DNA of 64,000 nt from Geosiphon pyriformis uo1 (Eukaryota; Fungi; Glomeromycota), in contig JAAOMT010000620.1 in the NCBI GenBank assembly GCA_016748015.1, positions 675,684-739,683 of the forward strand, in the 5' to 3' direction. The position numbers and the translations under genes are program-made. The notes beneath the pieces were generated by a model that had not been told where the DNA came from, did not search any database, and saw only the letters and a program-made list of their open reading frames with translations. Positions 3,763-52,730 of this stretch are shown piece by piece (the first letter of the stretch is position 1; each line of letters opens with the position of its first letter).

Positions 3763-5014
3763 TTAATTTAGGCTCGTGATTAAATACTCGACAAATAATT
3801 CAGCTACACGATCCATATCCAGAAGTGTATGCATCTTGTTAATATTCGTAAATTGTCGTTTTAATCTTCCCAATTCAGAAATTGTCAAATTACGTGACGG
3901 AAGATTAATGTGTTCTTTATCGATGAATTAATGATTAAAATGTAAGATATATACATGAAAAATAAATCTTTTGAAAGATAAACAACTGATATGATATAGG
4001 ATATAATTTGATTAGTTCGTAATATTTTAATCGGACCCGGACCAACGCTGTGTTTTTGAGCTTCCAATATACTATTAATAATTTCCTGCGAGGTTTTCTC
4101 CAATTCATATAAATAATTGGTTTCACTCACAGGTTTCTAAATTTAAAAAATTTTAGTTTTTCGTTAAAAAAAAAAAATTTTTTTCAACTATTCTTACCGC
4201 TATTGTCGATAAATTTGGTGGTTTTGCCTTTTTGTTCATAACTGCATCCCAAATAGAATCACATGGAACTGAAACGTCATCATATATGACCGTGAATAAT
4301 GGAGCGTCCCATCGATTACGATCATTTGGTTCTTCGAATCGACTTACTAGATCTTCAAATCTATTTAATCTTAGTATAAAGATTTTTTTTTAGAGTAAAA
4401 AACAATCTACCATTTCTCATTTTATGCACATTGATTCCTCATAAGATTCCTCTTCTTGGGCTCGATTTGAATTCCAAATTTTAGCTATTTCAACCGGTGT
4501 CCCACAATAGACCTATGCCAAATTCAAAAAAATCGAATTTTATAAAACTTAGACTTTAACCTTTTTAAAATAAATTAATTTCAACCTAAATTTCTTTTTT
4601 TTTATACTAATAAATATACCACGCAATGAGGAGTACCGACAGCCCGTGCGACACAGTATAACTGATATCGAAATCCTTTGATATAATTCATTCCATCCAC
4701 AATCACTAAGTCATTTTTAGAGAGAAGTCTTTCAACAGAAGATAACAAGTTTCCACGAGAATTTTTTTCTTCTATACGCGTATCTAAAATAACAAAAAAC
4801 GTTGGAAAGTTTTCAAATTCGGTAAAATATTATTTCAAAAAATTTCACCTTTATAACTATTTTTTGAAAACCCTAAAGTGATGTCGTTTATCAAGTGAAT
4901 TTGCCTAAGGGTTCTTCCTTCAGCAAGATATCGGTCTTGAAAATACTTTTCAATTTCTTTGGTGCGTCTAGTTTTCCCACTTGCCGGTATCCCACACATT
5001 GTAATTAAAGGCAT
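3763..5014 (-). CDS. KTI12: Elongator-associated protein Kti12 (P-loop, PSTK-like), multi-exon
   Basis: The spliced translation starts MPLITMCGIPASGKT (P-loop), contains IKGFRYQLYC and RFEEPNDRNRWDAPLF, and ends ELGRLKRQF...LFVEYLITSLN*. Confidence 0.93.
3910..4004 (-). other. U12-type (minor spliceosome) AT-AC intron in KTI12
   Basis: 5' splice site ATATCCTA, TCTTAC branch-like motif, 3' end ...AACAC. Phase-0 removal joins ...RTNQI to INLPSRNLTISEL... in frame. I found no GT-AG pair that restores the frame. Confidence 0.82.
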
Positions 5015-5483
5015 TTTGAGCTAGAAAGAACAATGGTGCGGGAATTTTTGGAAGGAATTCAATAAACTTTAAAATTAATAGATCATAAACTAACCCAAAT
5101 GAGTAATAAATCATAGCTGATATTTGAATAAATATTGGATTTTTTGTCACAGGCCCAATAACTCCCCAACTGTCATAATTATGTCAAAGACGATAAGAAA
5201 AGGTTTGGCCGAATTTTATAAACTCCCTAGGTTTTTAACTTGTTTCTTTGCAGAATTACTTCAATTTCTTTGAGCTATTCTTTTAAAAACTTTCATTTCT
5301 TTGTCAGAGGTACCACGTTCAATATCCTTCGGTGCTGTTGATTCCACCAGTCCTACCATTAGCATCACACCTACTGTCTTTGAGCCGACAACAGAAGCAG
5401 AACAACAAGAAATAACAATACAACTCGGTTCCAAACTAGATTACAAAATAATAAATCCCATACGACAGCACCGTCCTATTCTG

Positions 5484-6534
5484 ATGTCTGCAGGGTTCAA
5501 TCAACGCACTAGATTTCGACGGGATTTTAGTCGATGCTCACAAGAAGAGTTGTTGGAAATGTTGGAAAGAAATTCTTCTTTAATGAAAAATAGGTATTAA
5601 AATTATATAAAATTATACGATTTCTTAATAGAATCACGTCTAATAAACTTGTAACTTCTCGATATTGAAGCTTAGTAATATCAAATCTTCCAGATAAAGG
5701 GCAACGCCTTCACGACACCAATGCGCGACTTCTTCAAGCTTTACAAAAATTTGAGGCTAATGACCTTGAAAATTTAATGGTTGATAGTGAAGGCGGGATA
5801 GATGGGCATATTTACGATAATGTATTATTGTCTAATTCGAATGTATCGCAAATAGGATCCTTATCAGCATCAAAAATAAATGTCTTTGTCGGACCAACGG
5901 ACGATAAGTTATTAATGGAAGACAAATCTGTCAACGAACTACAGGCCAAATTAAGCAGGATGGAAATGATGGAGACCAAGGTTCTTAAAACAGATTCAAA
6001 CGAAATTCATAGATCCTCTCTATTTCTTGCGAACGGTACCTCTATTAAAGATTATCCACCGCGACGCGTGGGAAAATACCTTCAACCTGTTCGCCTTAAA
6101 ACCATTTCCATCAATCAAGCTGCTGAACTTGAAGAACGGCAAAGACGATTGCAAGAGGTAAAGCTTGATATTTAAAAGTTTTAGTTTCATGAAATACAAT
6201 GGCATCAATAGTTTTTTTTATCTTTTTTTATATAGCAAACAACACTCAAAGAAGCCGCTGAGAAACTCAAAAAAACCAAGATACCTGTTGTTTCTGCCCC
6301 CGGTTTTGGGTTTGTATAAAATTTCTCAACCTTCCTCAAAATCTCAATCATGTTCTCATTCGTCCTTTCCTATCAAGACATGCTGTCAATCCCCCATATT
6401 CTGAAGATGGTTCTGAAGATGATGACGATGACGACGACGAGTGGGATGATGATGAATATGAATCAGATGGCCATGTTGGTAGTAACGATGGAGTTGATAG
6501 AGAGATGGATTATGAAGAAGACAATGTGAGTTAA
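5484..6534 (+). CDS. Gdown1/GRINL1A (POLR2M)-like RNA polymerase II-associated protein, 4 exons
   Basis: Exons ~5484-5593, 5671-6157, 6236-6309, 6378-6534. Protein: MSAGFNQRTRFRRDFSRCSQEELLEMLERNSSLMKNSLVISNLPDKGQRLHDTNARLLQAL...ISINQAAELEERQRRLQEQTTLKEAAEKL...EDDDDDDDEWDDDEY. It has the LPDKG motif, a C-terminal coiled coil and an acidic W-containing tail as in Gdown1. Confidence 0.72.
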
Positions 6535-7299: not shown

Positions 7300-10006
7300 A
7301 TGTCACAGAGTTTAGAAGTCAAAAAATATGATGTTATCATCCTTGGAACTGGATTTGTAGAGGCAATACTTGCGGGGTATGCGTCTAAAGCTGCCATGGA
7401 GCATTATAATTCTTTCCTCGACTTTCAGGAACATTTTAAGAACTCCACGGTAAAACAGGGCTTTAGCACGAATTGGAAAATCTGTCTTACACTTAGATGC
7501 CAATGATTACTATGGCGGTGGTTGGAGTGCCTTTAACTTCCGTGAACTTTTAGCTTGGGTTCAAAAGATCCAAGGTTAGTCTATATAATTATTTAAAGGC
7601 TATTACCTAATTATTGAATTTTAATCAAGAATCTCTTATATCTAGGGTTTCTTGATAAGCCTTCGGAAAACGTTCAAGAAAGTAATACTTTAAAAACCAA
7701 GGTTTATTTATAATTAAAGTGAATACTGCTTTCAAAAAATTCGGCTGATTGATTATATTTCACAATATATATTTGCTCAGCAATTGAAGGCCTGCAACTC
7801 CTTACCACAAATGTTCCGAAAGCCATTTGCCAAACATACTCCTCCCTTGAATACGAAATATTTAACACCAAAGAAGAAGAAATTAAAGAGATTAATCCTT
7901 ACCTCGTTAATGATTTAACCAATGAAATAAAATCCGATTCAGCCACTCAACAAAATCAAAGGACTGTTCTGGGTGAAACTAATCAAACAACAAATTCACT
8001 AGATTATGAGACTTTAGCCAATTATCTTGTCACTGAAAAAAAATACGATCAAAGTGAGCCCATCGCTGAAATTATAAATGGGCATTATAATTCAAAAATA
8101 CTTCGACGAACGCGTGAGCATGAAGAAGCAATTGCTATTGAATCCGCTAGGCTAACTCAAATTTTGCAATTGCACAAAGGAAGAAATATCTCCAAAGAAA
8201 CTATACAAAATATTTCCCAGAGTTTACTAAGTTTTCAGCAGATAGAAACCCTTGCTCAATTATTAAAAGAATCCAAACGATATAATTTAGAATTGACCCC
8301 AAAACTAATGTCATGCCGCGGTGAACTTGTTGAACTCTTGATTAGCTCAGGAGTTGCGAGATATTTAGATTTTAGAGCTTTAGGCAATACTTTTATTTAT
8401 CTAGGAGAAGAGGAGTTTGAAAAGGTGATAATGATATGTCCTTTTTTAATAACATCAAGATAATCGAATGCGCTCAATGTGGACTTTCAATATATAGGTC
8501 CCTTGCTCAAAAGAAGATGTTTTTACTAATCAAACCATTTCATTAGTTGATAAGCGGAAATTAATGAAATTTCTAAATTTCGCCCAAAATTACACCAATT
8601 TTCCTGAGATCTATCATGGTAAGCTCTTTTAAATTCCTATTACATTTATAAGAAAAGTTATCTCATAATTAACGTATGAGCCAATCTCCCTTAGGTTATG
8701 AAAGTAAATTTTTTAATGAATTTCTTGTTGAGAAATTTGGTATCCAAGGAAAACTATTGCTTGTAGTTTTGTATGCGATTGCCTTAGTTCAATCACGGGG
8801 TGACGATGGTTAGAAAGCCTTTTCAGTTACCTTTTAACACTTCTTAAATTTGCTTATATTAATTGAAGATTATATATTCTTTTCAAGTCAAAACGTTGGA
8901 GGGTTTATCGAAAACCCAAAGCTATCTTAGTTCTTTGGGACGTTACGGGAATAACGCGTTTCTCGTGGCCTTTTATGGTGGCAGTGAAATCATCCAAGGC
9001 TTCTGCCGGTTTGCGATTTGAATTCTAATTTTGTTTTAAATACACACCGCGAAATTCGGTTCAACGCAAGTTTTTCTTTAGAGTATCAGCGGTTTACGGA
9101 GGAATATATATGCTTGCCACTTCTGTCATCAATATATTGATTGACGATGATTGTAAAAAGTTTGCGGGTCTAATTGATAGTAAAAAACGACAGCTATCGT
9201 CAAACTATTTGGTATCCTCCCTTGATTACCTTCCCAGTCATTTTCTAGCGCCCCAAGACACGTGGTATGTTGTTGATCCTAGTTTAGACATCTTCAATAT
9301 ACATAAATTTGACTTATAGCACCTTTTATTCCAGGGAACAGGTATCGCGGGCAATTATCATAATTGATAAAAGCTTGCATGGCAATGATGAGGCAACACT
9401 GACAATATACCCACCTGATATGGTTGAGAACCGATATCCAATACATATACTCCAACTAACACCGGGAACTCAAAGCTGCCCAGAAAATCGAAGTTTGTTT
9501 TGCTTTTATCATTTTCAGGCAAAATTTAATTCGTCTCTTTCTCCTCCCCTCGCAATAAATTTTAAATTTTTATGACTCGTTATTTAGGAATCTTGTACAT
9601 TTCCACAAAAGCAAGCGGATCCAGCGCCAAACAGGATTTGATATATGCACTGGAAAAATTAATCAACATATCCACAAATATTCATCGAGGTTTACATTTT
9701 ATGTCAAAGGTTCACTGATTGGTATATAAATAATATTTTTGGTTAATAGTAAGCTTTTCTTGTACAGGGTCTTCAGGATCTTCAAAGCCTAATCCAGTCT
9801 TCGCGTTATATTACCGAACATATGCTCGAGTCGCTACACCATCACTTCCTGAAAACATAATTCCCGTCAGCGATCCTGATTTAGCCCTTGACTTCGAATC
9901 GGCAACCTTAGAAGCTCGAAAACTTTTTCAGCGAATGTATATCGATGAAGAATTTCTAACCTCTCGTCCGGACCTTGATGAGCTCAATGAGTTCGATCTA
10001 AATTGA
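7300..10006 (+). CDS. MRS6: Rab escort protein / Rab geranylgeranyltransferase component A (REP/CHM/Mrs6; GDI superfamily), multi-exon
   Basis: Motifs YDVIILGTG...VLHLDANDYYGG, RYNLELTPKL..RGELVELLISSGVARYLDF, VPCSKEDVF...KRKLMKFL and SLGRYGNNAFL..YGGSEIIQGFCR. The long N-terminal insert is typical of REP rather than GDI. Confidence 0.88.
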
Positions 10007-14751: not shown

Positions 14752-16429
14752 TTACTTAGTTTCTTCAGTTTCGCCCTCTACTTTGGCTTCATCAGGCTTC
14801 TCAACTTCTTTTTTGGATTATTAACAGAATTAGAATGTGCAAAAGTGATGAACAAAGAAAAATTCAAATTTCTCACCATCTTGCAAATCAGAAGTCCAGA
14901 GAGTTAAATTGTCTCTCAGCAATTGCATAATCAAAGTGCTATCTTTGTACGATTCTTCACTTAAGGTATCGAGCTCAGCAATAGCATCGTCAAATGCTTG
15001 TTTGGCAAGATGGCAAGCACGATCAGGAGAGTTGAGGATTTCATAATAGAAGACTGAAAAGTTTAAGGCGAGTCCAAGACGAATTGGATGGGTAGGAGCA
15101 AGATCTGTTTGGGCAATATCGGTGGCATGCTTATAGGCTTCGTGCGCTTGAGTAGCGGCTTCTTTTCGCCTCTCACCAGACGCAAATTCAGCGAGATATC
15201 GATGATAGTCGCCCTTCCTGGCAAATTTGTTTAAATATAAGGTGAAATATATATTGGGTAGGCCCATAATTAAAGATTCCAAAACTATATCATCTCCAAC
15301 TAGAAATTATCATTTGAATTGTATAAGGCCCTTTATTCTCATAAAAACAAAATAACTTGTATAGATGTCACATTCTAGTCTTTACCCGGTTATTTTTATA
15401 GTAGCACACAAGTGGAATCAGGCGATTAAAAAGTCAGATGCTTATTATTGCACTTACATTTTATAATAAAACACTTTGGATTCACCGGCTTCAGCAGAAG
15501 GGATCAGATGCTCATCCAAAACTGCAAGAATATCAGAGCAGACTTCGGATAGTTCGGCCTCAACCTTCTGACGGTAAGCCTTGATTTTCGTGACTTGGGT
15601 TTCATTGCCTTTATTCTCTTCTTTTGCTTCAATGGATGAAATAATCCTCCAAGAAGCACGACGGGCACCGATCACATTTTTATACGCAACGGAAAGTAAG
15701 TTACGTTCTTCGACAGTAAGCTCAACACCAAGCTTTACGTTTTCAATTAAAAATTCATTATTGAGAAAAATTAAAGAAAGCCATTAGTCATTAAAAAACG
15801 ATAGATCAAAGAAGTCGTCATGTATGAAATGCTCATCCTTACTTTAGCAACATCCTGAAGAAATAAAAAAGGATTAAATGAGTATATAATAGAATTTTTA
15901 GAGCAAAATCTAAGATATTTCAATAAAACTTACTTTCATATAAGAAACCATTTCTATAAATCGGACAAGAAAAGGATTTAGTGGGACAGTTTCTCATTAT
16001 AAATCAAGGAATGATCGATGATTACAACCAAAGAGACTTACCGTCATAACGTTCGGCCTGCTCGGCGAGCTTAGCCATATAAACCTGTTTGGATGTCAAT
16101 ATGATGGAAAATCAAAAAATTTCGGTCAACCTTTTCATGGCAAAGCCAAAGACATGATCAAATTGAGATTTTTTCTCATAAAGCGCCACTGGATGAAAAT
16201 ACCTGGTTCTCGCGTTCCTAAATGACAGGAAAGATAAAGATGGTTAGCTCGGTTAATTTAGTTCAAACAATCACAAAAAATGAAATTGATGTCAAAACTA
16301 CAGGAAAGGCTTTCAGCTCGACCATTTTCAAGAAGAAACGTCCGAGGCGGATCAATTTAGGAAATTTTTTCGAATTCAAAGCTTAACCTCATAATAGTGC
16401 CTCAAATTAATACTTACAACAGTAGCCAT
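14752..16429 (-). CDS. 14-3-3 protein (Bmh/Rad24 family), 8 exons including five tiny 5' exons
   Basis: MATV|ERENQ|[14 protein letters not shown]|EMVSYMK|DVAK|[31 protein letters not shown]...[10 protein letters not shown]...[19 protein letters not shown]...[16 protein letters not shown]. Confidence 0.97.
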
Positions 16430-17002: not shown

Positions 17003-18105
17003 CTAATCGATTAAACGTTTTCGCTGGAAGAATTTCTTGAGATAAAAAATTTGCCAGCCACCCAAGGAGAGCAAAACAAACATGGTACCAAGACTGAACC
17101 ACTTTACTCTTTCATTAGTAGATTCTATATGATCGCAAATCATAGAATAAATTTCGTATCAGATCTTTTAAAGCATTGGATAAACCTCACTTACCATTCG
17201 TATCCCTCATTCGAGCCTCGCGTTTCCTTAAATAATCCATCTCGTCTACAATCTCTTGTACAACTTGTTCTAATTTACGCAATTCGGCTTCTAATGGCGC
17301 CAATTTTTCAGCTTTAGCCAACGCATTATAATCAATTGCTTCGGCCCCAACATCAACATCAAGATCAATTGTACGATGGTATTTAGGGTCAGCATGAGAA
17401 CCTAAAAATTGATAATTGTAATTTTTCTACGTCAATATGGGGCATTTTAAAGCTGAATTTTGCTTATAATTGATTTCTAAAACCCGGTAGAATGCAGTCT
17501 ACTGAAATTAGGAAATGATGCCAAAGTGACATCAAAAGATCAAGCCAATAAATGAAGCAAATTCTAAAAATAATTGCAGATTGTAATACCTTCAGTCAAA
17601 GTATTTGTAAAACAAATAGCTATGTCTGCATCGGCATGTGTTGTGAAGGCTAAACGAGTATCTGTATTCACATCTCGTCTTTTTCCATATTCATTATGAG
17701 AAGGGCTATTATCAGTTACCTGAATGTTGGGTTTTCGTTAATTTCGGTAATTAATTAGTTACAGCGATATGATGAAAAAGACAAAAATACTTGAAAAATC
17801 GAAGCACAAACCCTGAGAAAGAACTATTCTTCGGGTTGTTCTTTATATTAGCTTCTTAAATGTTATCAAAAACTTACATCAATATCAATTCGCTGGTTAT
17901 ATCCTGCTCCAACTTTTATTGCAACCACGACTAAAGTGTCTGTTGGTACGTATTGTTTGATGCACTTTCTAGAATCAAAATCGGATGGTGCAGCCATCAA
18001 ATCAAACTTTATTGCTCTCACATGACACACTTTATCTCCTAATAAACTAAGAAAAATAAATAGAAAAAGCAAGTAAAAATGAGAAGTAACTCTAGGTTGA
18101 AACAT
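17003..18105 (-). CDS. ERV25: p24 family cargo receptor, delta subfamily (Erv25/TMED10), 4 exons
   Basis: Signal peptide, GOLD domain, coiled coil (LEAELRKLE...REARMRDTNESTNERVKWFS), TM helix and cytosolic tail YLKKFFQRKRLID*. Confidence 0.93.
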
Positions 18106-18287
18106 ATCTCATACACGCAAACTGTAGGAACTAGAGAGCCAGAATCTTTCGTAAAAATTTTGGCGAATTCCAATTTGCCGGCATTTCAGCTGCTATCATT
18201 GATATTTTAGATAATCAGGCACCTGATAATATAAAAATCCCATTGGCAATAAAGTGGAATGTAGTAGATAATTCAATAGAAAATTCA

Positions 18288-18358
18288 TGCCGTTGCCTGG
18301 AATCGAACCAGGGTCAGTGCGGCCACAACGCAATGTACTGCCACTATACTACAACGGC
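18288..18358 (-). tRNA. tRNA-His (GTG), intronless
   Basis: GCCGTTGTAGTATAGTGGCAGTACATTGCGTTGTGGCCGCACTGACCCTGGTTCGATTCCAGGCAACGGCA. Acceptor stem GCCGTTG/CAACGGC, GTG anticodon, TTCGA T-loop, downstream T4 Pol III terminator. Confidence 0.96.
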
Positions 18359-18479
18359 TTATCTGATCAGTAGAAATCCAAAAATTAAAATTTTAAATAA
18401 CAGATAACGAGAAAAATACGCGAATTTGAAGTTAAATTTTTTTTTATTGCTCATCTATTTTTATAGTAAATGTTTAAAA

Positions 18480-19930
18480 TTGAATGTGAATTATGCATTT
18501 TCTGACTAATTACTTAAATCAATTAAGACAATGTTATACTATATTAAATAATTTATTGTTGTTATTAATGGTTTAAAAACAGTTTTTGAAGCTATCCTGT
18601 CTTAAATTAGTTTTAACAACAGAAAACACCTTATTACTTATGTTAATAAAAGTATAAATACCATAAAAAAAGAATATAATACAACCAATTTAAAGCGCTT
18701 TACTATTAATAGGCTATATAAAATTGAAAACACTATTTTAGCCAACTATTTAATATATACACTAATTATAAAGAATTAATCTAACTATTAACAAAAAAAA
18801 TATACAAGATATTATATTTATTTTCAGTTTTTAAGATAAAAATTAATTATAAAAAGTATAAAAAATAATATTATAACAGTTGATTAAAAATAAAACAACT
18901 ATAATTCTTATTTATAAATAATTAAACATATTAATATTTAATACAATATTTATTAATATTTAAATTCAAGAAAATATATTTTAAAAAAAACAAAGCAATA
19001 TTCAAAACAATTAAAAAACTATCTTATTTATAACAAAATCTTATATTATTAAAATTAAAACAATTTTTTATAAGTTATTAAAAATATTAAAAAAAATTAT
19101 TTTTTATAATATGTACTTAAATTTTTTATAAAATATTTCTATAAAAAAGTCATTATTAAAAAACAATTAATTTGTATTATTAACTATTAATATACAGAAA
19201 TATTATTAAATATGTATAAAATTATAACTCTTATTAAAAAAAATAAAAAATAAAACAATAAAATTATCATAATTAATTCTAATTAAAAACTTATTTAATA
19301 AAATTGGAATTAATTTAGTTAGATTTTTTTTAATTATTTTTTAAAAAAACTAATATATTATTATAATAATTAATTATCTTAATAAATAATTTGAAGTTAA
19401 AGCAATTTAAGTAGTCAATATTAAAACAATAATTGAATTTATATATTAAAATCTAATTTAATAAAAAAAAATATTGTTTAATTAAAAAACTTATTTTATT
19501 AACAGTTTTTTTATAAAAATAAGCCAATAATTTAAAATAAAAAAACTATTATTGTTATATTATTTGTCAATTAACAATTAATTAAATAATTTAACTAAAT
19601 ATTATATAAAGCTTTAATAAAAATAAGTAATAAAAATAAACAAAAATATGATTTATTTATTAAACAATAAAACAAAATACTATTTATTTTATTTATTTTA
19701 AATTAAAAAAACAAATAAACTTCATAAAACTAATTACTAAAAATATTTTAAACTTATTTTTTAAAAAAAATTAGTTTATAAAAACTTTAAAAAATAATTA
19801 GCAAATTTTAGTTAAAAACATTAAACAATTATAAAAACAACAAAAAAAATACATGATTATTTATTTAATTAATCTATTAAATTAAAATTAAAAAACAATA
19901 AAATAAAAAATTTGATTTTTTTATTAAGTT
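18480..19930 (+). pseudogene. Extremely eroded Ty3/Gypsy pol relic (RNase H-integrase)
   Basis: Reversing C>T/G>A changes gives EHPIAYASR..EKNY..TDLE.LA at ~18620-18720 and integrase PF(D)KIGI(D)LVG at ~19285-19325. Confidence 0.6.
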
Positions 19931-22900
19931 TTAATAAATATGATCCAATTATTATTTAGAAATTAGAAACAAATTAAGTATTTTAGTACTAAATATAATA
20001 TATGTACTTCTTACATATAACTAATTACTTAAGCCAGTTTAAATTATATTATATTAATATAAAAAAAAACTTACTCAAAAAGAACATTTTTTAAATAATT
20101 TTAAATAATATAGTACTATTATTAATTAATTTAACCAATAACTTAACTGTTTTTAAAATATTAGTTTTAATAATAATAGGCTTATGTTTTTACAATAATA
20201 TTAAATTAAAAAACATATTATCATTTATAATAGACAAATTTATATAAAGATTAAATATATTAATATTCTTATAACTATATTCAGTTTTCAAAGCAACTAT
20301 CTTTTATTTTAGCTTATTAACAATCTTGCTAAAAGTATTTATATACACCAAAATTTTATTAATCTTAAAGCTAAATATATTATTTAAAACCAAATTTTTA
20401 TTAACAAACTGTTTAAATATAACAACTAAAAAATTAATTGACTTTATAATAAATTTAACCAATATAAAAAGCTTGATCAAATCAAATTTTAAAAAAACTA
20501 ACCAAAAAAAAACCATAAAATTACTAATCTTTATATTAACAAAAGATTAAAAACTAAAAAAAAACACAAAAACAATAGCTTTAATATAAGACTTAATACT
20601 AATAAAACAAAGCACAAAAGTCTTAAAAAGCTTAAAAATAAAAAATAAAAGTATTTTATAATTAACAGTCAAATAATTCAAATCTTAATACCTAAAACAA
20701 TATCAATATTTAAAAGTTTTTTACTAAATATAATATTTCTTCAAAGTATTAATTTTAATAATAACAATATTTAAATTATTTTGTAAGCCAAATATAATTA
20801 GAACAAACTAAAAACAATAACTAGAATTAAGTAAGTAAAGAATAAAACAAATTTGATTATTAATTTGAAAAATTATATTACTAATTTTAAAAATAATACA
20901 ACCAAGAAAAAGATTGATAATTTGGTCTTAAACTTATAATAAACAGAATAATTTTATTCTGATTTATTAAAAAAAAGATTCTAATATTATTTTTGCTTAA
21001 CAAATTTAAGCAATAATTTAAAGCAAATATAATAGTATTAAAATTTTTGAAGTAAACTACTATATTATCAAATGCTAATAAACTTTAATACAATACAAAA
21101 AACTTTACCAAACACATTATTACTCATAAAAATTAGGAATTATAATAATAAATAAAATAGACATAGTAAAAAGAAGAATTCTAGAATTTCAGAATTTTAG
21201 GATTCTTTTTAAGAAATTACAAGATTTCCAAAAATCTTGTATAACATAAATTATATATATATAATAAGAATATTAAAAGCAGAAAAAGTAATTTCAGAAA
21301 AATTCAACAATACTCTTTTCTTTAAAAGATAGTTTTCTATAACTTAAAATAGAAACATTTTTATATTAATAAATTATCTATTATTATTTAATCTATGTTA
21401 TTATCACTTAATTAAAAAAATATTAATTTATTCCATTCTATCAACACTTTATGTTAATAAAATCTAATATTTAACCATATTAAACCAATAGTTTTTAATT
21501 ATGGCTATTGATAAAATACTAATTTTTTATTTTTTTTTATTTTTTATTTTTTTTTATTTTTTATTTTTTTTTATTTTATTCTTTGTTGTTTACTTAATTG
21601 ATTAAAAAGATTAAGTACTAAGTATTTGATATTAAGAATAATCTGGTAAAAAATCTAAGAAAAAGAATAAAAATTTAAGAATAGCTTACCAGAAGGGCAT
21701 AACTGTCAAAATAAACCAGCCACTATGTTAAAGAAAAAAATTCACTAAAAAAACCATTAATTAAATCTCTGTTTATTATACAAAAAGCTCAACCAAAAAT
21801 TTCAAACTTTAATATCTTTAGAAATTACTAATATTATTAGCTATTAAACACCAAATTACAGGTTTGTTATTTGTTTCAACATCTCAAATAATTATCTGTA
21901 ATATTTGGTGCTTTTTGTAAGATATAATTCAACAGAGAACTGGCACTAATATTAACTATTTGGAAAAGTGGCAGACCAAGAAATCATAAAAAAAATCATT
22001 TAGGATTTGCAAAATTCTTATTTTAATATTAACAAACTTATCTCACACTAACAAGTAATTATTGGCCAGCAGAATCAGTTTTCAATTTCTATATCAATAA
22101 AAAAATTAAATCTTACTTGAAAAACCAAAGAGATTCAAAAGCTGTTTTTAGAAATTTCTATAGTAAACTACTACAAAACTCCATACTTCTACTAAATCAT
22201 CTGTTTGCACTATTAATCATACAAATAAACAAAAAAATTAAGCATTACACCCAACAGAAATTTTTTATTATTTTTATAGACAAAAAAAAATTACAAATTT
22301 TAACAGAAACACCAAGAAAAATACAACTGCCTAATTTAAAGAAACCAAGAATTGTTTTACCTATTAACTTATTATATTACTATATGTTTAGAAGTACTAT
22401 CTACATAACATCAGCAGTTGTATCTACAGCAGTTGTAAAAACACTATTAGCAAAAGTATTATTCCAAAATAATTAAAAAAAAGCCAAATTATTAAAAACT
22501 TATGACAACTTCTTTAAAAGATTCAAATTATGACTAAAAATATCATCAGAACTTTGATTACTATTATCTTAACCAGATTTTGGATCTATTAGTCATTGAA
22601 AAGATATCAAATTAGAAAAAAAAAACAAATATCAGAAAAATAATAATTAAAATCTGATCTCAATTAATCTGGAAATCATAACTCTGATTGTTCAAACTTT
22701 ACAAAATCCAAACAATTCAAATTTCACTCCTATTTTTTAGCAAAACTTATTTTCAGTTATCATGATTAATCTACCAGTTGTACCAATTGCTACACAACAA
22801 TTACAATAACAACTACAATAATAACAACTTATATTAATAGTATATATATTAATTACCAAACTAGAAAAATTTACCAGTAAAGAGAACAATGTTTAAACAT

Positions 22901-25900
22901 GGTTAAACAATATAAAAAAAGCATTTGCAGCCAACAAATGGGACAACACCAGAGCAATTCAAGCAATTCTTTACTTTTTTTAGGACACTACTAATTTGTA
23001 ATATCAAAATCTTGTAAACAAACTTCAAAGTTTTAACATGTTTAAAACTGTGTTTTTATAGCATTTCAGTAATAATAATAGCCTAAATCACTTGTTAACT
23101 AGTTTTACCACAATCAAACAAGATGGTACTAAAGCAGTTACCACTTGCTTGGAATGTTTTCACAGGAATTTGTGTTAAATTTATGCAATTTAAGTTAATT
23201 ACTTTATAATAATACAGATTTTAAACCAGTTTATTTGTGAATTACACAGCAGCTTATTATAATAAATACATTCAATGTATCCAAATACCCCTTAAAACAC
23301 AGTTATATATATTCAAAATTTTAAATTAGTCAAATTCAAAGCTAATCATGCCCAAGTTGTAAATCTAGTAATAAATAGATTATCTAAATAAAATACCAAA
23401 TTGAAACAATTTGGTAAAGTTATTAATCAGAAAATTAAGAAATACTTGGCTAATAATCAAGCCATTTAACAATTTCTACAATGTTATGATAATTCAAGAA
23501 ACTCTAATTACTTTCAAAATTAGTTGTGTCTAATACTATAATTATTATCAAATTAACTATAACAACAAGAAATGCATAATTGTTATCATTGTGATAAATA
23601 AAGTTATCTAAAAACAGATTATTATTTTAGATTTAATAACCAATAATTAGAAAATCAATATTAAAATTCCAATTGCAGGTTTTAAACTCCAAATTACATT
23701 CAAATTAGAAACAATATTAATATTAGCCTTATTATATCTTAATAATGCAACAACTAATATACTTATCTTTAGTATATTAGACTTTAGCATTAATAATATA
23801 TCAATCACAGCCACAAATCATTTATTAATTCCAACAAATTCAAGTGTCATCCCAAATTACTGTGCCAATACCAACTAAAAATCCAAGGCTAAGAATTATT
23901 TACACTCAGCAAAATTGAAAATTGGCAATAGTAATAAACCAACCAATTTTTAGTTTATTAAACTAGTCATTAAGATTATACTAGCAGAGTTTGGAAAATA
24001 AGTACACTTAAAACTCAAATTTCCAGAACTATTTAAGTCTTTTAGTTACTTCAGAAAACAACTCATTCAACAATTTAGAAACCAATTAACAACCACTTAT
24101 CAATAACATCCTATTAGTAACTATTATAAAAGACAAATTCTTAGTTATTATCTTCTTATTTGAATTAGAAAACCAATTAAAAACTCTATTATTCAGTAAA
24201 ACTGCTCTTAATACTAAACTTATTACAGCCATGTATACAGATGCCAAAGTTAATGGCCATTCTATCAAGCTAATTCTTAATAGTAATTTAACAAACAACA
24301 TTATTACATAATAACTTATAAACTAATTAGATTGCCAAGTGAATGGTATTATCAGTGCCAAAATTATTACAGCTAATAGAACAATGAAAACTCTTATTAA
24401 TAAAATTAACAACTTCTTTTTTGAAGTCAATAATATCATTGAATTTATCAAAGTTCTTATTATAAAAGTCACTTAATACTAAGTTTTTATTGGTAATAAC
24501 TGGCTGTTTAAAACCAATATTATACTTGATTAAACCACACAAGAACTACAGTTCAGTTAAAATAGTCAACAAACTTGGATATCTGCTATCTGTGGCCACT
24601 TCAAAACAAATATCATCATCCAATCACCATTAATTAAGTTCAAAAAAGAAAAAAAAAACCTATCTAAAAAGTTTATCAAGTCTTATAAACTAAAGATAAT
24701 TATAATAAACTACTACTAATACTTTTTTAAAATAACAAAGAAAAAAGAAAAAAAGAAAACAAATCACAACCCACTACTTTTACAAAAGAAACAAATAATA
24801 GTTAACATATTTTATACTTATTGTAACCAAAGAAAAAATCACTTTATTATTAAGATTTAGAACTTACTCAAAAAAAACAAAAGCAGTATTTAAAATAATT
24901 AAACACTAAACTTTATAAATATTGTTTAATTTTTGGTGATTTCAAATATTGTAATAATTGTAATCTTATTTATAATCTGTTACTATATATGATTTATTCA
25001 ATTTCCAAAGAAAAAAAACCAATCAACAGCTACACTTTGAAATTAGAATCAAAATTTAATTTCAATTCAAACTTTAATAATAATAACAATAATAATTCTA
25101 ATTTTGTCCACAATAGCAATAACAATAATAATAATTCAAACTCCAATAAAAACTTCAAACAATATATTATGTTTTTAGATCTTTTACAAGAGCAGAAACT
25201 TAAATATTTTAGCAATAATAATAAGAATATTATGTTAAAATGTGTGTATAATACTAATACAAGATTTAATCTTAGATATCTGGAAAAAACTGCTATTAGA
25301 TTAGAATCTTATTTGCATACTAGTATAGATTTAAGAAATTTAAAAAATTTTGATAGAGCTCAATATTAAAAGGAGAAAATAATATTACTTATAAAAATTA
25401 AGAATTATAATAATAGATAAAATAGGCATAGTAAAAAGGGAAATTTCAGAATTTCTCTTAAAAATTGTAAAATTCTCAGAAATTTCATATAACATAAATT
25501 ATATATATATAGCAAAAGTATTAAAAACAGAAAAAATAATTTCAGGAGAATTTAACAATATCTTTTTTTTTAAAAGATAGTTTTTTATAACTTGAAATAA
25601 AATCATTCTTATATTAATAAAATTATCTATTATTATTTAATCCATGTTATTATTACTTGATTAAAAAAATATTAATTAATTTCACTCTATTAATACTCTA
25701 TGTTAATAAAAATTTAATACTTAACTATATTAGACCAATAGCTTTTGATTACAGTTATTAATAAGATACTAATTTTTATTTTTTATTTTTATTTTTTTTT
25801 ATTTTTTTTATTTTTTTTATTTTTATTTTTTTTATTTTTTGTTGTTTACTAAATTAATTAAAAAAATTAAGTACTAAGTATTTAATGTTAAGGATAGTCT

Positions 25901-27260
25901 GATAAAAAATCCAAGAAAAAGAGTAGAAATTTAAGAATAGCTTATCAAAAAAGCATAACTGTCAAAATAAATCAGCTATTACACTGAAAAAAAAAATCTA
26001 CAAAAGAAACTATCAATTAAATTTTTGTTTATTATACAAAAAACTTATCCAAAAACTTCAAACTTCAAAATCTTCAGAAATTACTAATATTATTAACTAT
26101 TAAATACTAAGTTATAAATTTGTTATTTGTTTTAACACCCTAAATAATCACTTGTAACAACACCAAATATTATTTTAACATTAATAATAAATACATTCAA
26201 AGACATATTATGCAATATAACAACAGCAAAAAAAAACCAAACTCAGAAATCACCAAAAATTTGGCAATTTTAAAAGTGACAAATAAACAAAACTTCTAAG
26301 TTTAATCAAAAATACAGTTTTTAAAAACTATTAAAAAGCAAATTTCATATAAAAGAGCTTTATATTGTTTTTTATAACTAATTTTGTATTCAAAAAACCA
26401 TATATAAACTAAAAAACAGTCTTAATATAAGCCAATTTAATCTTGAAAGTAGTATTAAGCACCAAAATAGAAATTATTTACTTAATAAATCTTTAATAAT
26501 TAGCAATAGTTTTTTAAGCACTATCAAAAGCAGTACCAGAAAAAATAATAATAATTTAGTTTTTATTTGATTAATTCAGTTCTTAAGAACAAATGACCCA
26601 ACAAAAAATTATTGTTTTGCTTTTAAACCAATAATAACTCATTAATAAACATTATATTTAACAATATAACTAATAATTAATTTTGGCCCATCTTAAATAA
26701 TATGCTGAATAATACTATAGAGATATTATTTAGAATTTTATTTAAAACTACAAAAAAGTTTGGTATAATAATAGCAAAAGCAAATAACTGTTCTCACTTT
26801 TTAAAATTTTAAAATTTTTTGGCCATTTTCAAAAAAATAATACTAATAGTATTAAATATATTAACAATAATTGGAAAAACTAACTTGTTAATTGATCTGT
26901 TATTAAAAACTTTTGAACTTTTGGTAAAAATAGAAACAACACTAAACTAATCCAAATATGTTTTTTTAAACAGATTTTAATTGGTAAAAAACTAGTTAAA
27001 GATAAAAAAAATGTTTTAACAGCCACTAAAAACAGTTTTTTATTATTATTATTTAAAAAAAAAGCTTTTAAAATATTTTGTCTAAATGTTTTTACAATAG
27101 AAAAAACTTTTTTGATTGAAATTTTATTAGATATTTTAGAAAAAATATTAGTTACAACTTTTTTACTCTTTGTTTTAATTGTGATTATAAAATTAAAGAA
27201 ACAAAAAGTTTGATTTAAAATAAAATAAATTATTTTATACATATAAAATAATAAAAATAA
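19930..27260 (-). mobile_element. ORF1-only LINE-derived element, copy A (eroded), split by a Gypsy insertion
   Basis: Segments 20580-21117 and 26160-27190 align colinearly with 28340-29910. Eroded 3' hairpin at ~20019-20039. About 2.3 kb once the insert is removed. Confidence 0.75.
21118..26159 (+). mobile_element. Internally deleted (non-autonomous) Gypsy element, family A: LTR-PBS-gag-PR-start of dUTPase//PPT-LTR
   Basis: LTRs 21118-21903 and 25383-26159. TSD ACAT/ACAC. Eroded PBS tttggtgctttttgtaag at 21904, PPT aaggagaaaataa before the 3' LTR. Colinear with the element at 36848-47261 until a deletion at ~25335. Confidence 0.88.
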
Positions 27261-27679
27261 AGAATATAAATTACAATTAAAAACAAAATCTTAAAAAACA
27301 ATACATAAAAATTAATTAAAATTTTATTATATATATTAATTAAATTCAAAAAATTTTTATAATATATAAAACTCAAATATTATTATTAAATATAATTTTA
27401 TTAAAAAAATCAAGTTATTATATATAAATATTAAACAAATTATTCAAAAAAACAGAAATATTATTTTTATAAACATTTTAAAAAATTCTTTAATTTTTAT
27501 AATAATTATTTAAAACAATACAAAAATTAAATACAAAACTAAAAATAACAGTTAACAAAATAGAAATTTATTATAAAACTACAAATTAAGAAAACAAACC
27601 AAAAATTTAATTAAAACTACTTATTCTTAATTTTATTAAACAATATTTAAAAAATATTATATTATATTTATAAAGTAGT

Positions 27680-29960
27680 AATTATTATTTAATGAGCGAG
27701 ACCCAAACACTACTTAAAACTATAATATCACAGAAAGGATTATATTATAGGTGTAAATTATGCATTTTCTACATGTGATCAGATATTTGGCCCAATCAAG
27801 AACTCACTATGCTAAACCAAAAGTAGATGAGAATAACTCCAACCCATGAATTTTCTCAATAATACCATTCAGATTCCTAGAGTCAAAAATAAACTCACTA
27901 AGAAACAATCTAGTAGATTCAATATTGCTCCTGGTTTTAGCACCAGACATTCACCACAAAGCAATAATATGCTCAATAGTGTCCTCACTTAAAAAGAAAG
28001 ACTTAGCAGCCAGCATACTATCATAATCTATACTACCAAAGTCAACCTCAGATCTAAGACAAGCAATATCCTTAAAAACTTCAACTATGAGGTTAGCAAA
28101 ATTGTTAGCAGCACTCTTCATGAAAATAATATCTTTCTCAACTTGAACAGCCTTAACAACATTATTATCAAGAAGACAAGACACCAAAGCAACCAAAAAA
28201 CCAACAGACTCAACAATAGACTTAACCAGAACAGCCAAATCCGAAATCTGCTTTTCCAAAGAGTCTAATCTAAAACCAACAGCAGAAGCAGCCGAAGAAG
28301 CTACCAAAGGAGGAAACTCAGAAAAACCAGAAAGAGCAGCAGTCTTGACATATGAAGCAGAACCCACAAAATAAGACTTGAAAACCTTGGGAACCTTAGG
28401 GAAAACCTTGTAATCCGCAGCCAGATGACCTACTTCTTGACACCTAAAGCAGTGCCGGCAGCCAGGAGTTTTCTACCAGATACAGCATTTCTTTAGAGTA
28501 CCAGTCTTGACTACAGCAGAATCTAAATTGTTTTGAGAGTCAAATGTAACTAAAGCAAACTGGGAATGACAACCAGAATCAGAAGACTGAAGGATGAAGC
28601 ATGTTTGCCTACCAACTTAAGAAATCATATCATTAATTTCAAAAGCTGTGCAACCAGAAGGAAGATTGACCCAACTTGGCCTTGAACCTATTACAAAACA
28701 GAATGGCCTTATTCTAATTAATAACTGGAAGGATCCTAACACTATCTTTGCCCACCAGAATTAACCAATAATTGAGAGCAGTAGTAACAGCATCCAATTT
28801 TTTAAAGTAAACAACCATGTACTGCCAAACACCAGCAGGCTTCAGTACAACATGGGCAACCTCACCAAATACACCAAGAGCTGTCTTAATATTAGCAGCT
28901 GACACACCCAAGGGTATATCATGCAGCACAACAGCAGCAAAAGAGGAACCAGATTCAAAAACCACCAAAGACTTGGCAATTTTTAGAGTGGCCAAATGAA
29001 CAGAGCTTGTAACTCAACCAAAAACGCAGTTTCCAAAGACTGTTGAGAAGCAAACTCTATACAGAAAAGCTTTATATTGTCTTTTGAAACAGATTTAACA
29101 TCTAAAAAACCATGTACAGACTAAAAAACAGCTTTAACATGAGCCAATTTGATCTTAAAAGTAGCATCAGACATCAGAATAGAGGCCATCCACTTAGCAA
29201 ATCTTTGATAACTAGTAATAGTTTCCCAAGCACCACTAAAAATAGCACCAGAAATTAGAGGAGAAGATATTTCAGTTTCCATTTGATCAGCCCAGTTCCC
29301 AAGAACAGGTGACCCAACAGGAGGAGATTGTTTTGCTTCTAAAACTGGTAATAATCTGTCAGAAGATACCACATTTGGCAACACAGCCAGTAGTTGATCT
29401 TGGCCCATCTTAGATGATGTGCCAGATGATACTATGGAGATCTTATCTAAGATCTTATTGGGAACCACAAAGGGTTTCAGTGTAACAATAGCAGAAGCAA
29501 GTAACTGCTCTCACTTTTCTGAACTTTTGGTCTTTTTGACCATTTTTTTAAAAAGGTGGTGCTAGCAACACCAAGTGTTGAATCTATGGAGGGGAAAACC
29601 AGCTTATTTACTGGTCTATTATTAAAAACTTTTGGGCTCTTGGTTGGGGTGGAGGCAACACTAAGACTAATCCAAATGTGTTTCTTTGAGAGAACTTTGA
29701 CTGGTGAGAAACCAGCCAAAGATGAGAAAATTGCTTCAGTGGCTATCAAAGGCAGCTTATTACGATTATTGGGTAAAGGAAAGGCTTCTAAAACGTTTTG
29801 CCTAGTTGTTTCTACAACAGAGAGAGCTCCTCTGGTTGAAATTTTATTAGATATCTCAGAACAGATATTAAGTACAGCTTTTTTACTTTTTGCTCTGGTT
29901 GTGGTCATAAAATTAAGGAGACAAAGAGTTTTTTGCCAATTTAAAGTAGTAAAAAATTAA
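27680..29960 (-). mobile_element. ORF1-only LINE-derived element, copy B (Gag/ORF1p-like with CCHC knuckle, LINE-type 3' tail)
   Basis: A broken single frame runs from ATG 29908 (MTTTRAKSKK...) to ~27805, with knuckle CFRCQEVGHLAAD(C/Y) at ~28410-28455. It is followed by a hairpin (27777-27797) and the terminal motif TTTGGGTCTCGCTCATTAAATAA shared with the full LINE. No APE/RT sequence is present. Confidence 0.8.
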
Positions 29961-30789
29961 AATAATTTATAAATTATATGTAAAAATAGAAAATTTATTT
30001 TTAAAATTTTTAATTTATAAAAAAAAAGTTTTTTTTTGGATTAATGTTTTAATAAAAGTTTATAATTAAACTTGCTAATACGTTTTTTTAATTTTTAATA
30101 AAAAAACTTTATTTTAAACAATATACCTTAATATAATTAATAAATTATATTATTATTTTTATAAATTTAAGATAATTTATAAATTAAAAATAATATTAAT
30201 TAATAAAATATTTAAAAAAATATTAAGCAAATAAAAAATTATTTATTTAAATATACTTTATAAATTATTAATTATGATTATTCTAATAATGTAAAATCTT
30301 ATTATAAAATATTCAGTCATTTTTATTTATCCAAAAAAATTCAATATTAATAATTAAAACAAATAAATATTTAATTTTATCAAAAGTATATTATGTTTTA
30401 ATAATTAAAAATATTTAAAATTTGTAAACTTTTAATAATTATTTATTAAAAAAAATCAAATATAAAATCGAATTTAAAAAATTTGAATTAGAAAAAAATT
30501 TATTAATTATTTTAATTTATTTAATTAAAAACCTATTTGTTTTACAATTTAAATATTTTATTAATAATAAACAAAAAATAAAATTAAAAAATACACACAA
30601 AATTAATATTAATTTATAATCTATAATATTTAAAAAAATTAATTTTGTTCTTATAATTATTAATTAAATTAACTTAAAAATTATTTTTAAATTTTTACTA
30701 AAAACAATAATACAAATTATTATTAAATTATTATTAATAAACAAAAAAATTAACATTAAAAAAAATATAAAATATATTAAAAATATATT

Positions 30790-33700
30790 TTTTTTTATTA
30801 ATTTTATAAGTACAGTCTATTTATAATTTAATACTATATATTAAATTAAATAATTTAAATTAGACATAAATCACATACTTTTTACTTATAACTAATTATT
30901 TAAGCTAATTAAAACAATATTACAATTTTATTTTGACTAAAACAATACTATTATTACAAATTTGAATAACAAGCTAATAGATAGCAAAAAAAAACAGGAT
31001 TATAAAGTAATAGAAATAATCAAAGAGAGAATTACAATAAAAGAGCAAATTAAATAAATAAAGATTCAATATGCATGATCAATCTTATAAAAATCATAGT
31101 CACAAATCTTTTTTGAAAATTTGAAAGTAGAAAAATAGTCTATAATTGTTAACAAAATAACATTACTGCTATTATTCTATGTTTTAATTTGATTATTCTT
31201 AAAATTAATAACAGGTATCATTGTGTTTTTCAATTGTTTTTTTATTTAATAAATTACAAGAGCAAGCAATTACTTCTCAGACTAATTCTGACAAATACAA
31301 ATCAAAAAAAAAGATAGAATATGTGAATGCTAACAAGTAATTTTTTATTCCAAGATATTTAGATATTTGAAGATAGAAAAAAGGAAATAAGCAATATAAG
31401 AGGAAGTAATTAATAATGAGTTTTATTTTATTACTTTAATCATGTCTTTTTATAGTTAAAAAACTTATTACTTATATAGCTATTGAAAGTAGTTAACAAC
31501 TAGATTAATAACTAGATTAATGATTAGATTAATAATCAGATTAATAATTAAATTAATAATCAAGTTAATAATTAAGTTAATGATTAGGTCAATAATCACT
31601 ATCTAAAAATAAAATGGCTAATTATATAATATTAGTGGTTAATACATGTAATAGCTAATAAAAAGTATAAGTTTTAATTATAATATTATTAATATTAAAA
31701 AAAAATGTGCACAATCTGTATAAACCAAAACATATATTATAAATAATCCAATAATATTACCAAAAAGTTGAAAAAACAAACTTTAAATTACAAAAAACAT
31801 AAAGCCATTACAAATAACAAAATTACTCATTTTTAAGATTGTTCTATATTTAGATTTAATCAATTATATTTTATCACCATAATTTTTACTTAGACTGTAT
31901 ATAAAATTAACAATTATTTTAGCAACAAATTTGGCACAACTAATAATTAATACAGCTTCTATATATTATTTTTTAAACATAATATCTTTGTACAAAGCAG
32001 TATATTATTTAAAAAATATAAAGAAAATATCTGCAAAATATAAAATAAAAGCAAATCTAAACTTAATAAAAAGCATTACAAAGTAATATATAAACCAAGC
32101 AAATTTTTGTGAACAGCTAAACTAAATTTACAAGTAAAAAAGTAATTAAAAAATTTTATTTTACCACAATAAAAACACAAAATGCCAAAGTATTTTTTGT
32201 TGTATAAGTATTTATAAATAGCAACAAATAAATAATAATACAAAGTTTTTATATAATATAAATGCAAATTAATAGTTGATTTACTTATAAAACTAAAAGC
32301 CATATACAAATTAAAATGCCAAACTAAAAAAATTTAAAACCAATTAATATCCTTAATTAAATTTTTTTAAATAATATCAAATTTAATTTGATTTTCTAAT
32401 ATATATAATAAATACTTTTAAAAATATTATGCACAAAATTTTAAACATTATTGAATATCACTATACTATTAGCTAAAATATTTTTTTTTAAACAAAAATC
32501 AAAAGCACCAAACCAGAATAAAAAACAATATTGGTCAGCTTATTTACCCATTCATTTTCTAAAATACTTAAATGATCTTTAATTTTTAATCAAGAGACAA
32601 AAAAATTTTTACTATTATTATAATTCATAATACTATACTTTTCAAGTCAACAATAATTGTAAAAATTTGGTAAAATTATAATTAGCTTAGCTAAGCAAAC
32701 ATCTAAAACAGTCTAACTATCTAAATATATTATTATAATATTAGAAATAAAAATACATTCTAGAACTAACACAATAACTTATAACTTTATCAATATAGAT
32801 AAAGCCAATTTATTAACTTTAATACTTACTGTCAGATTTAAATTTACAAAAAATATAGCTGTATTATATTTTATTTTATACATATTCAAATTTTTTAAAG
32901 AGCCATCTATAAAAATATTAATAATATCTAAATTAGCATCAGAAAAATATTTTTTTAAAACACAATAATTATTAGAATTATAAATATTTAAAAATCAAAA
33001 ATTGTTAATCACTAACTATACAACAAGATAAAAAACAATATTACACAAATAATCTGATTTTAAAACAAATCAATAGAAAATTAGACTCTTAAAATTGAGT
33101 TTTTTTTAATAATAAAAACTTTTTTAATCAAAAATTAACACTTTTTTAATATAAAACTGCTTAACAAAAGCAATATTAAACCTTTTAAATAAGTAAAAAA
33201 CAAAATAAAACATGGATTTTTCCAGAACAAAAAATATTAGAATGCAGCCAAAAAGATAAAATACAAAAAGCAAATAGTTTACAAAAAAAAAAATATATTT
33301 TAGAAAAAATTTTGTTATATTAGTTAAAAAATTATATATTAGACTAACTTTTAACTTAATAAAATATCATAATAAATAATTAAGAAACTAATATAGCATT
33401 TGTAAATCCAAAGATTTATGATCAAATAAATAGTAAAAAATATTATTAATATTAAAAAAATATAATAATGTAACTACTTTATTTTTAGTTTGTTTTTTGG
33501 TCAAAAGTTTTTAAGTTATAAAAAAAAAAATAGTAGATAGTCTTATTAAAAAAATTTTTTAGCAAATTAATCTTTATTTTTAAATTTTTTCTAATTAATA
33601 TATCTTAATTGTTATATATATTTTTAAAGATAAAACCAAACTAAGTTCTATAATTAACAATAGACTAAAGCATAACTAAAATTAAATAAAGAAATTATTT

Positions 33701-34830
33701 ATCCAAAATCGTTTTTTTTAAAACTATTTTAGCAAAAAATTTGACATTAAATAGATTTTTACTAGTCTAAGTTTGAATAATTTTTTTAAAAACAAAAAAT
33801 TTCTAAGTATCTGTAAAATTTATTTTTTTTTATAATAAAAATCAACAAACTATTTATTAAAAATAAAACATTTTGATTTTTTAATTAATAAAGATAATCA
33901 CTATTTTTTTATTGTTAATAAAAATATTATTAATATTAAAAAACTTACTAATAATATCTAATATGTGTTAAGTAATAGGTTAATAATTCTCTATTTAAAT
34001 TATATTATTAATAAAAACACCAGCTATTAAATAATAAATTAATCTAGTCTAACTTTTAATTCTGCCAGTTTTGGCAGTATTAATATAATATTTACATAAA
34101 TGTTTATATTGTTTATTTTATACAAAAAAAATCATAAAAAATCTTTTAAAACAGTAAAAAAAAGATTTTATTCTGGTTCAGATTATTATATATTTGATAT
34201 TTATTAGTCAACTCAAAATTTGTTATGATTTAATTAATTCTGTTATTGTAAATATTACCAAAAAAATTTATAAAACTTTTACATATTTTCATTTAAACCA
34301 AATTATTTTTTAAATAGTGTTAATTAACAAAGTTATAAGTCTTGCACATATTCTATAAAATAAGTCAAATTTTACAACTTTTTTTTAATATATTTTTTAT
34401 TATTAAATTCATTGTAAAAATTAAAAACTAAGTGGTAATACTTTTTAAAACAGAAAAATTGTTATTATAAAAAACATTATATTTGCTATAAATTACAGAA
34501 ATCTTATTTAAAAAAATTTTAAAAGAATTTTTTTGGCAGTTTTAATTAATACAATAGATTTAATATTGGTTTGAACTTTTTTTTACTTGTATAATTTAAG
34601 AATTATAAACATCCAAAATTCTTTCTAAAATTAAAAAATCAATTTATATACCAAATAAAAATTCAAAAAAACCAAAAGCATTTTTTAAACATAAATATTA
34701 CAATACTTTTACAGCTTATTATTAATACTTAACAAATCAGCAGTTTTTTATTTGACAAAAAATATTATTACCAATAAAAATTTGAGTTACTAATTAAGAT
34801 TAAGTTATTTTTATAATTTTTATTATTAAT
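30790..34830 (-). mobile_element. Old, heavily eroded RNase H LINE (ORF2 RT-to-3' end)
   Basis: Eroded RT motif (LQ(D)M.K.Y(D) at ~34330-34365), RNase H-region similarity, eroded 3' hairpin at ~30890-30910 and a T-rich (poly-A) end at ~30790. Confidence 0.65.
30952..31685. mobile_element. Solo LTR (family B), eroded
   Basis: Aligns along its length with the LTR at 59932-60598. TSD CTAT/TTAT. 12-bp tandem array at ~31490-31600. Confidence 0.8.
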
Positions 34831-52049: not shown

Positions 52050-52730
52050 TTTTATTAAATTATTAAATATTATTAATAATTTAATTTATATAATATAAAA
52101 ATATAACTAATTATAATAATCAAATTATATAATATTTTAAACTATATAATATTTAAAAATTTGCTAAAATATTTAATAATTTACCAAAATATTTAATAAT
52201 TTATAAAAATAATTTGTAATTTACTAAAATATATCTTTAATTTACTAAAATAATAATAAAGAAAAAAGTACAAAATTATAGAATAATATTACAACAAGTT
52301 GTATAAATCAATTAGCTAATACAAATTAATAAAATAAATTTTACTTTAAAAACTAAAATTTTTTTATAATTATTACTGTTTTAAAATTTAAAATATTAAT
52401 TAATATTTTGAAATTGATTAGTTACTAATTTTAATAATTACTTAATTAATTTTAGATTTGAATTAAAAATTTTATTTTTATATATTTTTTTATTTAAATT
52501 TTAAATTTTTTTTTATATTATTAAATAGTTTACAGTTAAAATTTTCCATAAAAAAGTTGATTTTTACAACAAAATAACTATATTAAATAATTAGTATAAA
52601 TTCAATAGCAATAATGATCTAAAATATAAAAAGATATTTAAAAAATAAATTAACTTATTAAAAGTTTATTAACTTTTATTAATAACAAATTTAACAGAAA
52701 AATAATATTAATAACCAAATTTTTTATTAT
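52050..52730. mobile_element. Highly eroded LTR of family C (inverted relative to 1254-2245)
   Basis: Reverse-complement blocks match, e.g. aaaatatatctttaatttactaaaat, tacaacaagttgtataaa and ttttgaaattgattagttactaattt. Boundaries are approximate. Confidence 0.65.

Follow-up and report, generated by a model that had tools for sequence, protein, structure and literature searches.

A very probable ortholog of the RNA polymerase II-binding protein Gdown1 in the fungus Geosiphon pyriformis

Gdown1 (POLR2M, GRINL1A) has been termed metazoan-specific or metazoan-restricted in papers from 2022 to August 2026. In a 64,000-nucleotide stretch of the genome of Geosiphon pyriformis, a fungus of a mycorrhizal lineage (the stretch is here called the window), we found a transcribed and spliced gene that is very probably a fungal ortholog of Gdown1, so that the ancestry of Gdown1 likely predates the animal-fungal split. 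The protein adds a member to a known family and corrects the range given for that family, without amounting to a new system. Homology to Gdown1 had been proposed in a preliminary description of the window, and it is supported here by an ungapped profile match of 51 residues to the human protein, by the Pfam family GCOM2, and by the closest clusters of the ESM Atlas.

The features of the gene are collected in the table. In one public RNA run, a transcript contig of 1068 nt has a GT..AG joint at each of the gene's three coding introns and continues unspliced past the stop codon to 6580. This read-through leaves the extra 3' exon of the deposited model KAG9289203.1 unsupported. Because the RNA support is a single run with an uncertain label, possibly the genome project's own, it is used as evidence of splicing and not as an independent occurrence of the gene. 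Intron 1 had been proposed in the preliminary description, and its acceptor proved to be the sole one of five tested that leaves the frame open through exon 2. The N-terminal motif quoted in the preliminary description, the coiled segment (which requires the removal of intron 2), and the acidic, tryptophan-containing tail are all present. Genome searches found the locus in single copy.

Table. Features of the Gdown1-like gene in the window (positions are those of the window)
Feature	Position	Strand	Remarks
Gdown1-like gene	5484-6534	+	four coding exons from ATG 5484; 275 aa
Candidate first coding micro-exon, MSKTIRK	5181..5202	+	Ambispora match; deposited model also starts here
Upstream intron, alternative donor	5231..5307	+	implied by loose end of RNA contig
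Exon 1	5308..5593	+	coding part from ATG 5484 = 5484-5593
Intron 1	5594..5670	+	77 nt, GT..AAG, phase 2; RNA joint
Exon 2	5671..6157	+	sequence and RNA contig
Intron 2	6158..6235	+	phase 0; RNA joint; common to Ambispora
Exon 3	6236..6309	+	sequence and RNA contig
Intron 3	6310..6377	+	phase 2; RNA joint; phase-2 intron at equivalent place in Ambispora
Exon 4	6378..6534	+	acidic tail, W-x-x-D-E-Y at 6442-6459; stop 6532-6534
RBR-like block (RPB10-binding region)	5523..5752	+	split by intron 1; corresponds to human Gdown1 15-65
LPDKG motif	5687..5701	+	LSDKG in Ambispora
Central helix, five-hydrophobe CRM1 export-signal consensus	5930..5968	+	candidate NES1 counterpart
PBR-like segment (protrusion-binding region)	6071..6268	+	GKY-x-x-PVRL, TIS, long helix, AAEKL; split by intron 2

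Searching exon 2 against 1.84 billion proteins returned KAG9289203.1, one protein of Ambispora leptoticha, and one unlabelled fragment; two further phmmer matches were compositional false hits. KAG9289203.1 is the gene's own deposited model, a hypothetical protein of 377 aa, and it departs from the RNA-supported model at both ends. A word-indexed protein search with exon 2 and two metagenome scans gave no match. A search with the ortholog protein located an unannotated ortholog in A. gerdemannii (12893_t). This protein and the A. leptoticha one (CAG8447205.1) are 35-39% identical to the window's protein and have the same blocks, although they carry LSDKG in place of LPDKG, lack AAEKL, and have shorter linkers. 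Exon 1 is 53% identical to A. leptoticha (pairwise E 2e-13), and both Ambispora genes match the Geosiphon gene in the position and phase of four introns. Searches with an ortholog protein and with a fungal profile reached only Archaeosporales and no animal, Mucorales, or Dikarya sequences, a result from which absence in those groups is not to be inferred. In the A. leptoticha model, an annotated 60-nt intron (L002:2955-3014) is in frame and is not found in A. gerdemannii; it is probably an annotation artefact. Upstream of the Geosiphon gene lies a KTI12 gene (4003-5037, minus strand) in head-to-head orientation, its ATG at 5014 about 170 bp from ATG 5181, with four introns in a transcript contig. 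This pairing is not conserved, as Snf7 takes that place in Ambispora. Downstream, a gene of the GDI/REP family occupies 7300-8463 and beyond on the plus strand.

The comparison with Ambispora also bears on the start of the gene. Both orthologs begin with a micro-exon MSIKR, followed by a phase-1 intron and then E-V-P; in the window, MSKTIRK is followed by a GT donor at 5203, and E-V-P follows the acceptor at 5307, in frame with ATG 5484. The methionine of ATG 5484 corresponds to an L or I inside the Ambispora proteins and to L4 of the human protein. Because the micro-exon is matched in Ambispora and the methionine chosen in the preliminary description is internal there, the conserved start is probably ATG 5181, which adds 66 aa for a product of 341 aa. 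The 275-aa form may arise by alternative splicing. A 16-nt loose end at the start of the RNA contig maps to 5213-5228 and implies the upstream intron listed in the table; with donor 5231, ATG 5181 is out of frame and opens a 27-codon uORF, and ATG 5484 is the first in-frame start. Use of donor 5203 was not seen in the RNA contig. The two donors share the acceptor at 5307, one giving the conserved long N terminus and the other the uORF ahead of ATG 5484, and splicing-based regulation through them is possible.

We searched the window gene exon by exon and used the Ambispora orthologs for full-length searches and for folding. For the N-terminal block, we used a profile of four rows in which each of the window's exons had a row to itself. 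Searched against the PDB, this profile retrieved human Gdown1 (28jc_M) over residues 15-65, without gaps, at E 2.5e-6; the next match was at 0.058. By hand count from the profile alignment, 20 of the 51 residues are identical to the human ones, and 15 of these lie outside LPDKG. Two Pol II contacts of the human cryo-EM structure (10.64898/2025.12.10.693371), R30 and L44, are kept, and R33 is not (human numbering). The human N terminus given in the preliminary description is correct, as judged by the PDB alignments. Pfam GCOM2 (PF15328), also searched exon by exon, matches the first 40 residues of exon 2 (E 1.4e-4). The scores are 19.7 to 22.6 bits for exon 2 alone and 17.5 to 18 bits for the Ambispora orthologs, with a gathering cut-off of 27 bits; those of the window fall under the cut-off because the intron splits the block. 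The depositors' joined model, KAG9289203.1, carries a precomputed PF15328 tag and reached 28.3 bits in a Pfam scan, a score on which our conclusions do not depend, and the GCOM2 model run against the Geosiphon genome finds only this locus. The A. leptoticha ortholog has a variant of the 5-mer, yet its sole PDB match at E<=10 is human GRINL1A (E 0.085), over human residues 4-65 and thus as far as the N-terminal GF motif. The closest ESM Atlas clusters are GCOM2/GRINL1A (0.89 and 0.92), and a cluster of 82 members, mostly Mucoromycota and 11% PF15328-tagged, ties at 0.92. Three helices are predicted in the N-terminal block of the Ambispora ortholog.

By itself, the LPDKG 5-mer occurs at chance level (in 128 Mb, 51 matches to the pattern versus 32 in the reversed control). 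The similarity extends beyond those five residues, as seen from the identities outside the motif and from the 50 other [LF]PDKG sites in the genome, which score at most 5.6 bits with the N-terminal profile, compared with 30.6 bits for the human protein. About 33 of these 50 sites, on many contigs (e.g., L006, L012, and L038), belong to one degenerate repeat family with C-x-x-C just upstream, which is probably transposon-derived. The exon-1 helix without the LPDKG half did not retrieve human Gdown1, nor did exon 2 alone against the PDB, and NCBIfam gave no relevant match. As judged by these sequence searches, the significant support for homology comes from one block, the N-terminal one.

Three Gdown1 blocks in order had been claimed for the window. 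The segments concerned are all present, in the right order and with the right spacing; the part that did not gain independent support is the C-terminal coil and tail, which have no database match of their own. Searches with a C-terminal profile, the end of exon 2, and exon 3 retrieved no human Gdown1 at E<=10. The exon-2 part of the PBR-like segment is nevertheless the best-conserved part of the protein among fungal orthologs (20/33 and 24/33 identical), and fungal conservation is highest in the two putative Pol II-binding blocks. The segment is predicted to form a long helix in the Ambispora model. The I of TIS stands 28 positions ahead of the L of AAEKL, just as L304 does ahead of L332 in human Gdown1. 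The tail W-x-x-D-E-Y aligns with human W-x-x-D-E-F, an alignment that is not significant. A likeness of the residues in human 305-331 to the fungal C-terminal helix is a lead only. The C-terminal block is probably the counterpart of the human PBR. The AlphaFold models (pLDDT 53 and 67) were uninformative, since their fold matches were generic helical hairpins such as uL29.

Between the two blocks lies a central helix that the preliminary description had overlooked, at 121-141 in the predicted model of the Ambispora ortholog, about 30 residues ahead of the PBR-like block. The export-signal consensus that it carries occurs once in each of the four fungal sequences, always at this aligned position, and the linkers around it are poorly conserved. 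Human NES1 (191-201), the stronger export signal, likewise lies between the N- and C-terminal blocks (PMC9728996). Because the pattern arises in 3-22% of single-sequence shuffles, and given that the four fungal sequences are related, the case for an export signal is one of conservation in place. The helix is a candidate counterpart of human NES1 that may act in export.

Taken together, the likeness to human Gdown1 (28jc_M, 9t5h; PF15328) covers the ungapped RBR match with R30, L44, and LPDKG, the three N-terminal helices, the central export-signal-like motif, the long C-terminal helix with the L304-L332 spacing, an acidic tail ending in W-x-x-D-E-aromatic, and a similar size (human, 368 aa). 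The landmarks used for the human protein were the RBR at 19-73, the EBR at 224-255, and the PBR at 290-334 (L303/L304), and human residues were taken from the PDB alignments and from the cited literature. In contrast to human Gdown1, the fungal protein is probably extended at its N terminus by 66 aa that include a conserved micro-exon, and its GKY-x-x-PVRL ahead of the C-terminal helix is fungal-specific. Besides R33, the CAS arginines R352/354/357, the NES2 register, and the S270 site are not recognisable in the fungal sequence. No EBR counterpart could be recognised in alignments of the fungal orthologs or profile, where the linker is short and poorly conserved, and the EBR is probably absent or diverged in the fungal protein.

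A protein that is no ortholog, and that shares with Gdown1 and TTF2 just an RPB10-binding LPDKG helical module followed by chance coiled-coil and acidic sequence, would fit the restriction of significance to the N-terminal block and the blank C-terminal searches, and TTF2 does carry LPDKG. However, the match spans human 4-65 including the GF motif, block order, spacing, and tail motif agree with the human protein, and whole-sequence language-model features pick GCOM2 clusters in a protein with no SNF2 domain; we consider this explanation distinctly improbable. TTF2/Lodestar itself, whose LPDKG competes for Gdown1's Pol II site (10.64898/2025.12.10.692585), is ruled out as the identity of the gene, since there is no SNF2 helicase Pfam domain downstream of LPDKG and the transcript and stop codon define a short protein (a frame of 275-341 aa, also without a GRF zinc finger). 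Contamination by animal DNA, or horizontal transfer from an animal, could be suspected from a literature that calls Gdown1 metazoan-restricted and from alignable matches confined to one fungal order and one unlabelled fragment. Yet the gene lies on an 840-kb contig between the KTI12 and GDI/REP genes and gives a spliced transcript, orthologs with four common introns occur in two independent assemblies, and the 82-member cluster is mostly Mucoromycota. The contig setting, the transcript, and the Ambispora orthologs with common introns exclude contamination, and we regard an animal source by either route as extremely unlikely.

Human Gdown1 contacts RPB10/RPB3 by its N-terminal block and the protrusion of RPB2 by its C-terminal helix, in a position that clashes with TFIIF and TFIIB; it is present on Pol II in the cytoplasm, alongside RPAP2 and GPN1/3, and CRM1 exports it (10.64898/2025.12.10.693371, 10.64898/2025.12.10.692585, PMC8887472). 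We propose for the fungus a single-copy Gdown1 ortholog inherited from the animal-fungal common ancestor, encoding a mostly disordered protein with few helices that would bind RNA polymerase II in the manner of human Gdown1. Its LPDKG-bearing block of three helices at the N terminus would dock on RPB10/RPB3, and the C-terminal helix would lie on the RPB2 protrusion, excluding TFIIF and TFIIB. With a conserved CRM1-type export signal, the protein would be mainly cytoplasmic and would link RPB2, RPB3, and RPB10 there while the enzyme is assembled. New Pol II would be kept inactive en route to the nucleus, after which Gdown1 would be displaced and exported. We consider an ortholog with such a cytoplasmic, RPB10/RPB2-binding role in Pol II assembly and escort reasonably likely.

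Alternatively, a true ortholog could act chiefly in the nucleus in Pol II(G)-type repression, blocking TFIIF and a termination factor and making transcription Mediator-dependent. Blocks like the two responsible in human occur in the same order, the fungal sequences agree best in the PBR-like one, and the genome keeps another animal-type regulator, the Integrator subunit INTS2. On the other hand, human Gdown1 is mainly cytoplasmic (PMC8887472), and recent structures put it on cytoplasmic Pol II (10.64898/2025.12.10.693371, 10.64898/2025.12.10.692585). The export-signal-like helix is conserved in the fungal sequences, and a genome search, which is a weak test, did not find NELF-B or NELF-C/D. 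Nor did we find a TTF2-like LPDKG site in the genome, where an intron or a variant motif could hide one; a look-alike at G000:C725:379646 proved to be the reverse strand of a retroelement-like ORF. RPAP1 and RPAP2 genes were found in the genome. Because of the export-like signal, the presence of RPAP1 and RPAP2, and the failure to find a TTF2-like LPDKG site, we favor the assembly and escort role over Mediator-reversible repression in the nucleus, which we consider unlikely.

A fungal ortholog overturns the metazoan-specific label and bears on whether the basic role of Gdown1 is repression in the nucleus or the assembly and escort of Pol II in the cytoplasm. What was kept across the animal-fungal split (the RPB10-binding block, the probable protrusion helix, and the putative export signal), as opposed to what is unrecognisable (EBR and CAS), suggests a minimal core, and early-diverging fungi could give a simpler genetic system. 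More speculatively, and with some doubt, Gdown1 may be an ancient Pol II biogenesis factor of at least opisthokont age, perhaps pan-eukaryotic, that first chaperoned and silenced cytoplasmic Pol II; competition with TTF2, the CAS anchor, and Mediator-dependent Pol II(G) would have been added in animals, and the factor would have been lost in model yeasts. We found no report of a fungal Gdown1 in the literature covered, outside of which many subscription papers fall. Fungal Gdown1 is already visible in databases, through the PF15328 tag on the deposited protein and part of the Mucoromycota cluster. Because the alignable matches come from one order, the 82-member cluster is the single basis for breadth across fungi. 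Surprise at the finding is tempered by these existing tags and by the presence in this fungus of Integrator, which was supposedly animal-only.

Further observations were made in these searches. INTS2 scores above its Pfam cut-off at G000:C623:334209-336225 on the minus strand (L056, L057). Two clusters of the ESM Atlas are leads, and no more, to a broader distribution of Gdown1: one of 57 members (210 aa), mostly Euglenozoa, with scores of 0.86-0.87, and one from Basidiomycota (380 aa), which ranks first in a weak shape search (TM 0.29). Elsewhere in the window, the ORF at 14830-15282 on the minus strand encodes what we take to resemble the C-terminal part of a 14-3-3 protein, and the GC content at 18001-34000 and 52001-54000 is very low (0.08-0.24), consistent with AT-rich repeats or masked stretches.
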